Program-made: the position numbers and the translations under genes
Shown here: positions 176 to 63,493 of the stretch, piece by piece
Numbering within the stretch: the first letter of the stretch is position 1
Layout: each line of letters starts with the position of its first letter
Origin: Phallusia mammillata
Lineage: Eukaryota
DNA length: 64,000 bases
Direction of reading: 5' to 3'
Assembly: GCA_965637545.1 (NCBI GenBank)
Contig: OZ281498.1
Location: forward strand, 434,001-498,000
Notes under the pieces: model-generated
What the model was told of the DNA's origin: nothing
The model's input: only the letters and a program-made list of their open reading frames with translations
The model's database searches: none

Positions 176-2402
176 ATGAAAGTCTGTGGTAATTTGTGGA
201 AAGTTGTTCTGGTCTCTGCAGCTGTTTGTGGCACTTTTGTTCAAAGTCACAGTTGGATTGCGTGCACAGATTATACGGAGAAGAACGGGGCGGATTGGAA
301 CCCAAATAAATGCCGAGGCTTTCCCAGAAATTCCGAAGAAAAATGCCCCAAGACAGGAGTGTTCGGACTCGATAAAGGTTTGTAGACGTTGAACCCAATA
401 ATTTCGTTGCTCTGACAACATGTTGTCCAGGTTACGACCACATTCCCAACAACGAGAATGCGTGTGGGGAAAAGAACCGCGTTTACACTGACAGTCATCC
501 AATGGCGGTTTACTACCCGGGTCAGCAAGTCGTTCTTGTTCACCCAATGAAGGTAAAATTATTGCTAATCCAACAATTAACGATGAAACAGCTGATATTT
601 TGACTTGACAGAATCACGGCGCCGACAGTGGATGTGGAAACATTTGGATTCCAGATTACGGCTCCTGGATATACAGAACAGGGGGACCCCCCAAACAGTC
701 GGATCCAACGCTCGAAGGATTCAAACAAAACCCAGTATTTGATCTCGGTGAGTTGGTCGGTGAAATTTTAACGGAAGATTCATTTATGTGACTATGATTT
801 TTGTGTCAGGTCGATCGCCGCGGGGTTCGGACTTCGGCACAGATCCGTCGTTGAGCAGCAAATATCCAAAACCCGGTTACGGCAATGCACCAAAATTCTG
901 CGCCAACACCGACAAAGCGATGGGAACGTACAGTTTCAATGTTCCACGGAACCTAAGGGCTGGGACGTACACCTTCATGTGGCTGTGGTCGTTCAACTCG
1001 GAGAATAATATGTACAGCACTTGCTTCGAAGTTGAAATCGCCGCAAACAAAGCAACTCGCGACGCCAAACTCAGGGTAACTGTTATCTTATAAACTCGGA
1101 AAAAGAATCTGCTAATAACATTTCTGATAATATAGTCGTCTATAGAAAGCGGCATGCTTAGGGCATCAAATTTTCGTACATAATACACACTAGTATCAGG
1201 AATATTGGTTTGTTAATAAAATGTTTAGAGATGTTCGGCCTTTCATCACAGAAGAATGCAATTATCATGATTAGACGGCGGGCCGCACCTTTGTTGAATT
1301 TACGTTGTCGGGTAGCAAACGTCTTTATGTTAAGTTAACAGCTTCTTGTTGAAGTTCGCTGGTGATTTTGGTCGCATTGCTACGAAGGAGAAAAATATTA
1401 CTGAGCGCATTGATCTGCATAAAAACACAAAAAATAACTGAAACTGCTTGTTAGCACTGCATTGATAGTATAGCTGGCCACACTTCTTATTTACTGCCGC
1501 TTCTTATAAATAACAGTCTTCTTTTAGAATTTCTATCATTACAATAACCGTTATTGTTTTTCATAGGCGAAAGGCTTCAATGACCTCACAGAGCCATGTG
1601 GCGGACTGACGTCAAACCCTGACGTCATGGGGAATTCCAACCCTGGCTGCACCAAGCAAGCGCAAGTTACGTACGCAGCAACAGCGGGAAATTCCTCTCC
1701 ACCCCCAGCAACGCAAGAAACCCCAGATGTAGAAAGTCCAACCGAATCCGTCGGATTTACCCCCTACCCATTCTGGCTGGGGTTAACGACGCCCAGCGCA
1801 CAACCCCCGTCTGGGGAAAATCCTGTAAGTGGATATCATCGGCCACCAAAACCTCACAGGTAAGCGTCAATAAAATCTTATGCAAGAGTGTGAATATTAA
1901 CCGGGTTTCAACCTTAACAACCCGTAACGTGCTACACGTCCCGGCAACAGATGGAAAATCAACCACATTTCATTGTATTTCATGTTTTCAGCATTCACAT
2001 GAGCGTGAATGTTCACATGAGCTCGCAGCAATTCTCGGGGGAAATGAGACTTCCGGTGGCGCGTGACCGAACAATCAGAAGATACGTCAGCGCAGATTTC
2101 ACTTGTGACGTCATAACTGCAAGTGTAAGTTCTCTATGGATTTTCAGAAACACGTGGATATTTGTCATGTGACAACTTTATACAAGGTTGAATGAACTCG
2201 TTGTTTAATTTTGTAGTTTTGGAACGCGATGACAATTTCGGACATGGAAGAATCGCTTAAATCACGCCACTTTGATATTATGCAACAAGGGTCGGAAGAA
2301 ATCAAAACAAATCGAGTGTTTTATCACGTGACGTTTGATGACGCGTGTGACCTCTCGATGCATCCGCCTGTTGTGAGACTAACACGCGAAGATCTGATGT
2401 AA
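176..2402 (+). CDS. Secreted LPMO-like (histidine-brace, putative copper) protein, ~445 aa, 7 exons: signal peptide, catalytic-like domain, P/T/S linker, C-terminal putative CBM2-like domain
   Basis: Exons 176-377, 431-552, 612-747, 810-1075, 1567-1859, 1992-2124 and 2217-2402 join with GT-AG sites in one frame (1338 nt). The signal peptide MKVCGNLWKVVLVSAAVCGTFVQS is followed by HSWIACTDY. A second His lies in HPMKNH, and the C-terminal strands read GTYTFMWLWSF...MYSTCFEVEI. The gene model is solid; the LPMO function is inferred. Confidence 0.75.
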
Positions 2403-43186: not shown

Positions 43187-43748
43187 GTAAGGTTTGTTTA
43201 CTAAGTGTTCTTAAAATGTAGAGAACACAGAATGTTTAAAAAGTTGATAAGATGGAAAACGCGCCGTGTAAAACAAGAAGCTTCAAATTCACAATTTTAA
43301 TCAGCAAAATAGTAAAAGCTTTCATATAAACGTTTGCTGTTATCAAGTTTATTGCGCAAGTTTGTTTATTTGGGATATGACATTGAACCTGTCAAGCAAC
43401 AGAGAGTAGAATGCTGTAGCAACACACCACAGTGTTTATCCTCTAAAGCAAACTTGACAGCATTTCACTATTACTAAGAATGGAAAGCATTTTCCAAGTT
43501 ACGAAATCCGTCAATGAATTAAATGGAATATAGATATTTCGCCTAATGGCATCATCAGTTCCTATAAAAACCACAAGATAATACATCAATAAAAGGAAAA
43601 GAAAAGTAAAAACACAACAAAACAAAGTGAGACGAAAACACTAAACTGAAAACAGAACACTACATTTCACTATTAAAAAGGTTTTAATCGATCTACAAAA
43701 TCTGTTTTCAAAAAAGTTTATTTCTTGCAGCTTAATTCAAAACCAAAC

Positions 43749-51953
<8,205 letters not shown>

Positions 51954-52355: not shown

Positions 52356-55300
52356 TCAATTATCACTTTCAATGGAACGACTCCCTGAAGATGTTATCCT
52401 CTGTCGTATTGATTCATGTGATAGTTTTCTAACGAAAAGATGAAACACATTATGTCCACAAACAGAAATAGGCCCACCCTAACATCACTATAACTTGACT
52501 TCGAAAATAATACCTTCGTAGTTGAAACTAAATAGTTGATATTCTAATTGTATATTAAAGTTTAATGTACATTACATAGCAATCATTAAAACAACATGAC
52601 AATAAAATGTTTTAAATGGGAGCAGCTAATTGTTTTCGGTTCACACGTTTTCAACCAACTAAAAGCCACAACCAAGCAAAAAGTACTGAGAGTCATGATA
52701 TCTCAACTATATAATACATAGATGTTCAGGTGCAGAGTTCAAAGTCAAAGTTTGGCTACTTTGAAAAACACTTTACCTGTTTTTGTACAACTTCACTTCA
52801 TCATCACGAACAAGTGGAAGTAGAAGAAGATTTGTTTCCGGATCTTCCACACATCTTTTAATAAGTTCCAAATATGTCAAGTTCTCATTTGTATTGGGGT
52901 CCAAAAATCCCTTGGTGTCATCACTTGGGTCATCTAAAGTCTGGTGAAGCCGTTCATCAAATAAACCTTTGAATATCAACAAACACAGAAATCTAGAACA
53001 ATTCACCGAGACAAACCAGGAAAATACAAAAAAGACGTAACTAAGAATTGTAAATTTTGAAATATGCACAACATTAGCACTTAAAAATGTTTATGTGAAC
53101 ATGAGTAATTACTTGTGACACTTACCTCGCTCAAATGCAACCTCTACTGGCAATCGATGATTAGCAACCGGATCAATGATGCCTCCGGTGGCGATTTGTG
53201 CTTCCAGCAATCGAATTCCATGGTTCTCAACAATCAGCCCCTACACCAATATAAGCACAACAATAATTAAACGTATATAATTCCCAATAAGTAACATTTT
53301 GTCCTGCATCGATAAAAAAGTTAAATAGAAAAGACTCACTCTTTTCATTGCTTGAAACAAAGACAACTTTTCATCAGACCCACGTGGAGTGTAACCGGTA
53401 ACAGCTCGCTGAGCACGCACCAAAACTGCTGCAAATGCTCGATCGAGTAAGTTGTGTTCAAGTGCCTCCTCTACTGACATCTTATCGTCAGTTATCGGAT
53501 CAATAATACTCCCGACAGCTGCTTGAGCTTCAAGCAAGCTCAATGCGGTACCTGAAAACATCCAAGGCAAAATTAGGCAAAACAACAGTAAATAAGTTTA
53601 GTGGTTGACTGTGAAAAATACAACCATGATCAGATTTGTAAGCTATAGTTCTCAGAAATGTACAGTACATACAAAATGTAACAGTTAGCTCAGAAATAAA
53701 GAGACATATACAGACATGTACAGTGCATACAAAATGGTACAGTAAACATAGAAATGTACAGTTCTCTTAGAAATAAACAGTGTGTCGCAAACAGAATTGT
53801 ACTGTACACAGACATGTAATATATATACAAAAATGTACAGTATTTTCAAAAAGTAAAGTAAGCACAGAAATTCATACCTCTAGAAATAATTCGCTGTTTG
53901 TGTGCGTCAAATAAAGACATCTTTTGCCCAGTTTGGTCATTAAATATTCCTGCAATTGGATATTGGCCAATCAGGAAAGGTCTCAGCTCTCTTTCCACCT
54001 CTTCCTCAGTAATCTAAACAAATTTAACATTTGCCATTACAACAAATAAAACTAAAAAAATGACGCAATAGGTAAACTTTGGAACACTATATAACGATCT
54101 GTTCATAAGTTTATAGTATAAGGCCCAAATAGTACCGGCCCAAATAAACAGCATTTACCAAAACGTTTAAACTTTAATATACAAGTAATCTCCAATGTTT
54201 AAACACACCCAATGTTAAAGCTTCCAGTGTTTAAAACACAAACTTACCACTTGTTCTTCGAGTTCAACAACTCTTGATTCTTCTATGACTTTTGCACGAA
54301 TCAAGTCCTGCAGTTTCACAGTCTTCCTCCATCCCGATTTAAACACAATATCATCACGAGATTTCCTTCTCTCTAGGGTTCGAGGGGGAGCACTTTTCTG
54401 CACATTTGCGTTCACTAGAGGGGGTACTAGATCCTCCACACCCTCTTCTTTGATAGCATCAGCTTTTCAAAAACATACATATTTTTTTTACTTTTCAGGC
54501 ATTAGATAGACTTAAAAAATAAAGCTCTAATTATCAAAATGTTTTGAAAAAAATGCAAGATTTGTGATTTACTGCTGTTTAAAAGCTTTAAATCTGTTGG
54601 TCTAAAATAAATTTAAAACACTTGAAATTAGTGCTAAAAGCTTTTTATTGTTACCAGACATCAATGTATTCATATAAAGGTCCATTCAGTAATCAAAGCT
54701 GAAAACCACTGGTATAAAGATATTAATTGAACAAAAATAGTCACAGAACAAACCATTCGATGTTTTGGAATCAGTTTCGGTCCCAATTTTTCCATCATTC
54801 TCTGTCAGTTTTCCCTCTGCTTCAATAAGCACATCATATTCCTGTCAATAAAAGCAAAATTGATAGGAACTGAGCACCACTAAATGATTATTTCATTACG
54901 GGGAGAAACAATATAGAAATATGCAAAGAATTACAGAGTTGTAATTACAAGTACTTAAAACAAAAAGATACATTGTGATCACTTGAATGGTTTGTGGCTT
55001 TAGCATTAAATTCAAAATAATGCACTATGATCACTTGTACAGTGTGAAGTACTCCAAACACCCCAACTTAAAAACAGGAAATTTACACACCTTTTTAATC
55101 AACACAACCACATCTTCCGTTTGGGTGCTTGTATCTTTATGTTGCTTGGATTCTGGAAAAATATTTCGTTAAACCTTGATTGAATTACAATCCACCCACA
55201 GCAACATGTCTAACCTTGAGTGGCTTCAGTTTCATGTGCAACATTGTCATATCCGATAATCTTCCTTTCAACATCCTTTGTTGTACCTAAAAATATATAT

Positions 55301-58245: not shown

Positions 58246-63493
<5,248 letters not shown>

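Follow-up and report, generated by a model that had tools for sequence, protein, structure and literature searches.

A spliced gene of Phallusia mammillata for a predicted secreted protein of an apparently undescribed family with a lytic polysaccharide monooxygenase fold and conserved histidine-brace residues

The window analysed here, a 64-kb stretch of Phallusia mammillata DNA that is free of N, carries close to its start a gene of seven exons on the forward strand (176-2402), whose 1338 nt comprise 445 codons and a TAA stop. The coding part of exon 1 (176..377) holds a predicted signal peptide, His1 and the first 43 mature residues; over 43 aa this exon shares 77% identity with Ciona XP_004225509.2. 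Exon 2 (431..552) codes for a core strand, with HPMK at its end and then a phase-0 intron; exon 3 (612..747) follows, and exon 4 (810..1075) provides the last three core strands together with the W-x-W and Y-x-x-C motif. Exon 5 (1567..1859) encodes a conserved two-Cys stretch of about 38 aa and then a Pro/Ser/Thr-rich linker (29 of 67 residues), exon 6 (1992..2124) the first half of a C-terminal beta-sandwich that is remotely CBM2-like, and exon 7 (2217..2402) the second half of this domain and the stop codon TAA (2400-2402). The six introns (53, 59, 62, 491, 132 and 92 nt) are all of the GT-AG type. Contigs from runs X1-X3, which are RNA by guess only, precisely omit all six introns and contigs from the DNA run X5 retain them; since the exon-exon joints are present in X1-X3 and absent from the DNA run, the gene is transcribed. 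Nine other RNA-like Phallusia runs contained next to no transcript of it. The preliminary description of this locus had rightly recognised an animal gene with introns and had placed its end at 1075, where three further exons are in fact spliced on, adding the Cys pair, the linker and the beta-sandwich domain. The gene is real, expressed, spliced and intact.

All exons align in order with the orthologues Ciona intestinalis XP_004225509.2 and Clavelina lepadiformis P0172, at 45-77% identity per exon, and in Clavelina all six introns interrupt the gene at identical codons and in identical phases. Searches and comparisons with the Phallusia protein model took its exons singly, never as a joined sequence; the Ciona orthologue (P0002) and the proteins of other relatives served as input for folding, for profiles and for searches at full length. 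A second copy of the gene was searched for inside the 64-kb window and none was found. Intron 4 contains a short high-depth repeat (1255-1292) that matches other DNA contigs of the same run, and a piece of exon 7 (2236-2353) recurs elsewhere in the genome at 92% identity with a 1-nt gap. Three tandem myosin heavy chain genes lie on the reverse strand (2600-35400), with a period of 12.0 kb and 97-98.6% identity including introns, and a fourth, inverted copy (97.2%) is found on the forward strand at about 43700-51900; the array is the product of recent duplication or gene conversion. The Clavelina gene likewise adjoins a myosin heavy chain gene. The reverse strand also carries a plakin gene exon with a plectin repeat (53244-53585) and an exon with a weak CBM14 (peritrophin-A) match (58799-59146; E 0.008), followed by a Thr/Pro-rich stretch.

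The 24-aa signal peptide (176..247) was predicted from hydropathy and from the family pattern at positions -1 and -3; its n-region contains two Lys, its core is hydrophobic (up to 2.9 over 9 residues), and it ends in V-Q-S. His25 (codon CAC, 248..250), the putative first brace histidine, stands directly after this leader and would become residue 1 of the mature protein. A His-first start was found in 177 of 180 full-length domain matches, near-duplicates included, mostly after a leader of 10-30 residues, and the predicted cleavage context in these 180 sequences has A, G or S at -1 in 162 and V, A or T at -3 in 147. These counts favour the earlier prediction that cleavage would expose His25 and bear out the conservation of His1 among homologues. 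The candidate second brace histidine, His110 (mature His86; 615..617), had also been placed correctly, just 3' of the phase-0 intron at HPMK|NH, and is kept in 71 of 71 domains of our alignment A1. The axial residue is probably Tyr222 (mature Tyr198; 1013..1015), at whose position the same alignment shows 70 Tyr and one Phe. Neither of these two positions was a criterion for picking rows; H1, S2, W3, C6 and C203 are invariant in A1 through row selection and were excluded as evidence. The late motif YTFMWLW...YSTC, with its Cys codon at 1022-1024, is present as described, except that its spacer has eight residues and not seven. Exon 1 (248-376) encodes three mature Cys, which brings the catalytic domain to seven compared with the six conserved in the family, and one of them may be unpaired.

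The catalytic-type domain, of about 205 aa, was modelled for the Ciona orthologue with high confidence (pLDDT 96.6, pTM 0.92). When this model was compared with 48,161 solved chains, all 22 rows at Z≥8 were LPMOs or LPMO-like proteins, and the structural alignments began at residue 1 of the model, which was paired with the N-terminus of these chains; two further structure comparisons agreed. Z scores were 10.9 for AA10 and AA15, 10.5 for AA11, 10.0 for AA13, 9.1 for both AA9 and fusolin, 8.5 for AA14, 8.4 for X325 (124 aligned) and 7.7 for AA16, and the 22 rows showed 10-17% identity and an rmsd of 2.9-3.8 Å. No single LPMO family stands out structurally, as is expected of a separate family. 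The model thus points to the LPMO-type beta-sandwich that had been proposed for the Phallusia protein. The closest predicted structures were unnamed Mucoromycota clusters of the ESM Atlas (TM 0.74 and 0.70 over about 180 residues), which have a feature similarity of 0.93 and no Pfam family, and bear the automatic names 'Lytic polysaccharide monooxygenase' and 'Chitin-binding type-4'. A structure search of BFVD returned nothing close.

Exon 4 matched at least 238 relatives, counted as cluster representatives at E≤0.001; long multi-repeat matches (P0001, P0040, P0077, P0101 and P0122) look repeat-driven and were set aside. Tunicate members were found in Phallusia, Ciona (two), Clavelina (two), Styela (at least five) and Oikopleura, and other animal members in Branchiostoma (amphioxus), Lingula (brachiopod), Owenia (annelid) and Watersipora (bryozoan). 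The family is also present in the oomycetes Aphanomyces, Saprolegnia, Achlya, Thraustotheca and Pythium, the chytrid Rhizophlyctis and the alga Phaeothamnion. Named members are all annotated as uncharacterised, hypothetical or secreted, and a few bear the automatic UniProt name 'Chitin-binding type-4 domain-containing protein', to which the LPMO_10 profile gives no backing. Furthermore, six IMG/VR contigs, three of them labelled giant-virus MAGs, encode intact members, and two more members lie on intron-free contigs next to genes of ribonucleotide reductase and RNA polymerase Rpb1; in two lineages of such virus or virus-like contigs the family gene is flanked by the ribonucleotide reductase small subunit gene on one side and Rpb1 on the other. 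Several of the intact members on giant-virus or giant-virus-like contigs (L001-L010) have CBM1-type tails. In addition, a member that aligns with the Oikopleura protein (cluster P0182) is represented by 69 sequences from marine JGI data sets, and may thus be common in plankton samples. A link to oikosins was looked for and not found. No paper on such a family or its gene ids was found in a search made mostly without subscription journals.

The regions downstream of the catalytic-type domain offer hints about the substrate. Pfam matches in 70 non-animal tails comprised seven CBM1, one CBM49 and one GH5 cellulase, and no chitin module. The GH5 fusion (P0093) lies on a gene-dense, eukaryote-like JGI contig (3300059473). 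In amphioxus members the tail matches Pfam CBM_2 (E 1.4e-6), and the animal C-terminal domain was modelled as a beta-sandwich (pLDDT 90); like CBM2, it is a sandwich of about 105 aa preceded by a P/S/T linker, and its fold search gave CBM2 structures at Z 5.2-5.7 and cohesins at up to Z 6.5, scores that do not tell CBM2 from cohesin-like domains. The tunicate tails differ from CBM2 in matching no Pfam family, and the tunicate domain is without the first surface Trp loop of the amphioxus CBM2-like domain. In members from Owenia and Lingula (L132, L134) the LPMO-like domain is followed by a thrombospondin type 1 domain. Because the fusions are to CBM1, CBM2, CBM49 and GH5, and none of those scanned is to a chitin module, cellulose or a related beta-glucan is by analogy the likeliest substrate of the family. 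From CBM fusions of this kind, Sabbadin et al. inferred the substrates of AA15 (PMC5823890). The animals named as carriers all live by particle or suspension feeding, a habit with which an older role in digesting algal walls would be consistent.

We are slightly more inclined to accept than to doubt that the Phallusia protein is secreted, acts oxidatively on polysaccharides and belongs to a new LPMO family, as its motifs and the modelled fold suggest. Signal peptidase would release His1 as the mature N-terminus, one copper would be held by His1 (through its amine and ring N) and His86 with Tyr198 in axial position, and the reduced copper would react with H2O2 or O2, so that a glycosidic carbon becomes hydroxylated and an insoluble polysaccharide chain is nicked. 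The linker and the C-terminal beta-sandwich would anchor the enzyme on its matrix, which in the animal setting could be the walls of food particles or, after co-option in tunicates, the tunic.

A rather unlikely but serious alternative is a copper protein with a histidine brace that leaves polysaccharides uncleaved and takes part in copper handling of the kind proposed for X325/Bim1, or supplies peroxide for matrix chemistry. A second-sphere Glu or Gln is typical of described LPMOs and in AA9 and AA11 lies two residues before the axial Tyr, some AA10s positioning it elsewhere (PMC12186267), and Asp or Asn at this site impairs turnover in AfAA11B and NcAA9C (PMC12186267, PMC10472438). The Phallusia protein has neither Glu nor Gln at this position, where it carries Asn220 (mature 196; 1007..1009), as do its orthologues; the 71 domains have Asp in 38, Glu in 8, Ser in 8, Gln in 5 and Asn in 3. 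Moreover, Gly178 (mature 154; 881..883), on which the RNA contigs agree without difference, occupies the site of a near-invariant Gln that is found in 67 of 71 members; the Ciona copy also has Gly and the Clavelina copy keeps the Gln. This Gln might fill the second-sphere role in the family, although the Phallusia copy has Gly there. The atypical second sphere may indicate a family with another second sphere, copper binding without cleavage, or a detuned Phallusia copy. The predominance of Asp, together with the Asn and the missing Gln of the Phallusia copy, speaks for a non-cleaving protein: copper might have the family Asp as its fourth ligand, or the Phallusia orthologue group could be a detuned copy. 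Indeed, Asp fills the fourth copper site in X325, for which convincing LPMO activity was not demonstrated (PMC10952591), and the Asp near the end of our family's domain could parallel it. The C-terminus is hydrophobic in 26 of 87 non-animal members, a feature of surface-anchored proteins. Against this, X325/Bim1 (6IBH), like AA16 (7ZE9), shares the His-first LPMO-like fold but has a smaller domain and a lower Z (8.4 and 7.7, respectively), so that the domain of the Phallusia family, at about 205 aa and with its conserved Tyr, is nearer to the catalytic LPMOs (Z 10-11). In addition, the Pfam BIM1-like profile matched no member tested, and recurrent fusion to cellulose-binding modules and a cellulase argues for an enzyme acting on polysaccharides.

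It appears improbable that the protein is an LPMO from a distant offshoot of AA11, the chitin-active LPMOs of fungi, with chitin as its substrate. AA11 and AA16 were the only families with PDB sequence matches below or at E 0.1, AA16 standing at E 0.1 and AA11 giving the best ones (E 2e-4 to 9e-3); exon 4 itself matched AA11 at E 0.002-0.004. The AA11 structures (4MAI, 7P3U, 9EXJ) share with the Phallusia family the fold (Z 10.0-10.5), the His-first start, the strand before the second His, the axial Tyr and the W-x-W...N...Y-x-x-C ending. The second His aligns with that of AA11, in a weak segment, and Tyr198 with the Tyr of the AA11 motif E-x-Y-x-x-C. Chitin makers are among the named animal carriers, which would also suit this reading. 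However, the sequence match extends over about 40 of the 200 positions in the profile, the AA11 domain aligns over about 150 residues, and similarity to AA11 over the full length was not found; structural identity is 13-17%, with a Z not above that of AA10 or AA15. The Phallusia family has a longer domain and an N-terminal motif, H-S-W-x-x-C, that AA11 is without. The Glu two before Tyr in AA11 is mostly Asp in the family and Asn in the Phallusia copy, the Tyr-Glu pair that marks AA11 (PMC12186267) being present in just 8 of 71 members. The 70 non-animal tails, moreover, contain no fusion to a chitin module.

The remaining comparisons also place the family apart. AA15 (5MSZ) and AA10 share its fold (Z 10-11), and AA15 occurs in animals, oomycetes, algae and viruses and is fused to CBMs, a taxonomic spread and fusion pattern similar to those of the Phallusia family (PMC5823890). 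Nonetheless, LPMO_10 (PF03067, AA10/AA15) matched only 3 of 71 members (best E 0.0075), no AA10/AA15 sequence matched in PDB at E≤10, and structural identity was 8-15%, in agreement with the preliminary view that the protein lies outside AA15 and AA10. The tunicate LPMO orthogroup of the Didemnum paper (PMC8704543) is, by its label, probably LPMO_10/AA15. For AA9, AA13, AA14 and AA17, neither Pfam nor the PDB sequences (E≤10) gave a match. AA18 (CelOCE) has a jelly-roll fold without an N-terminal His (PMC11946906; family assignment as cited in PMC13431639), and this identity was excluded for a His-first protein with an LPMO fold. The family once called 'LPMO14' we take to have later become AA16. 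The 'LPMO14' of Voshol et al. (PMC5320794) has a different taxonomic spread, and was rejected as the same family. The best Pfam match was DUF7492 (PF24320), which 49 of the 71 members hit at E≤1, the lowest value being 9.6e-8. On this profile exon 4 scored 25.4 bits (E 9.5e-6) and its Ciona and Clavelina orthologues 22.5 and 24.9, for a cut-off of 27 bits, and other members reached 27-29.6 bits; the matches of Phallusia, Ciona and Clavelina lie mostly on profile positions 188-244 of 265. The nearest Atlas clusters by features also belong to DUF7492 (0.92-0.94). DUF7492 comprises mainly ascomycete proteins of unknown function, and the Phallusia family would be a sister or fringe group of it; no paper naming DUF7492 was found. 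By the Pfam and PDB sequence tests available, the protein does not appear to be a member of AA9-AA11 or AA13-AA18, and no described AA family so compared claims it, as had been suspected. The family is apparently undescribed, with an LPMO fold and conserved brace residues.

The origin of the gene was addressed with an IQ-TREE phylogeny of 81 rows with a midpoint root, from which every other unnamed non-animal row and a number of long branches were omitted, with nine unnamed rows labelled tunicate and three 'other animal' by tree position. The 29 animal rows form one clade (100/98) with the tunicates nested inside, and exon 4 adjoins the Ciona protein; FastTree agrees on the animal clade. This clade is joined (100/97) to the chytrid protein and the P0093 GH5 fusion, which group together, and the oomycete and most viral rows come together elsewhere (100/98). 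The intron at HP(M/T)K|NH, before the second His, is common to Phallusia, Owenia, Watersipora and Lingula, and a second one, lost in the Phallusia gene, to Owenia, Watersipora, Lingula and Clavelina. Intron positions common to protostome and tunicate genes imply that the gene predates the protostome-deuterostome split. No bacterial source was found when exon 4 was compared with GTDB, and a motif scan for bacterial relatives gave at least 120 chance loci and no homologue among the matches listed. A horizontal acquisition by tunicates, like that of cellulose synthase, for tunic remodelling is hence very improbable: the several copies per tunicate and the mobility seen in protist and giant-virus relatives would suit it, but the single animal clade, the shared introns and the lack of a bacterial relative among the matches listed oppose it, and contamination of the non-tunicate animal genes is unlikely given their introns and large contigs. 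A tunic-specific role is not supported either, the family being older than the tunic. An older transfer into animals is conceivable.

LPMO families in CAZy are few, and AA15 is to our knowledge the only one characterised in animals. As a tentative extension of the enzyme reading, which we doubt somewhat more than we believe, the Phallusia protein could be a chordate member of a new catalytic LPMO family that oxidises cellulose through a His-His-Tyr site with an Asp/Asn second sphere unlike those of described families, and that tunicates have expanded for their own tunic or for algal food. A further brace-intact family would provide proteins to express from chordates, from oomycete pathogens of fish, crayfish and fungi, and from giant viruses. 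It would bear on the remodelling or digestion of crystalline cellulose by the only animals that make this polymer, and on the passage of viruses through the walls of walled eukaryotes, and the natural Asp or Asn where other LPMOs need Glu or Gln would be a ready test of what the second sphere of the copper requires. If the proteins prove to be non-lytic, they would still represent a widespread histidine-brace family and give a likely meaning to DUF7492.
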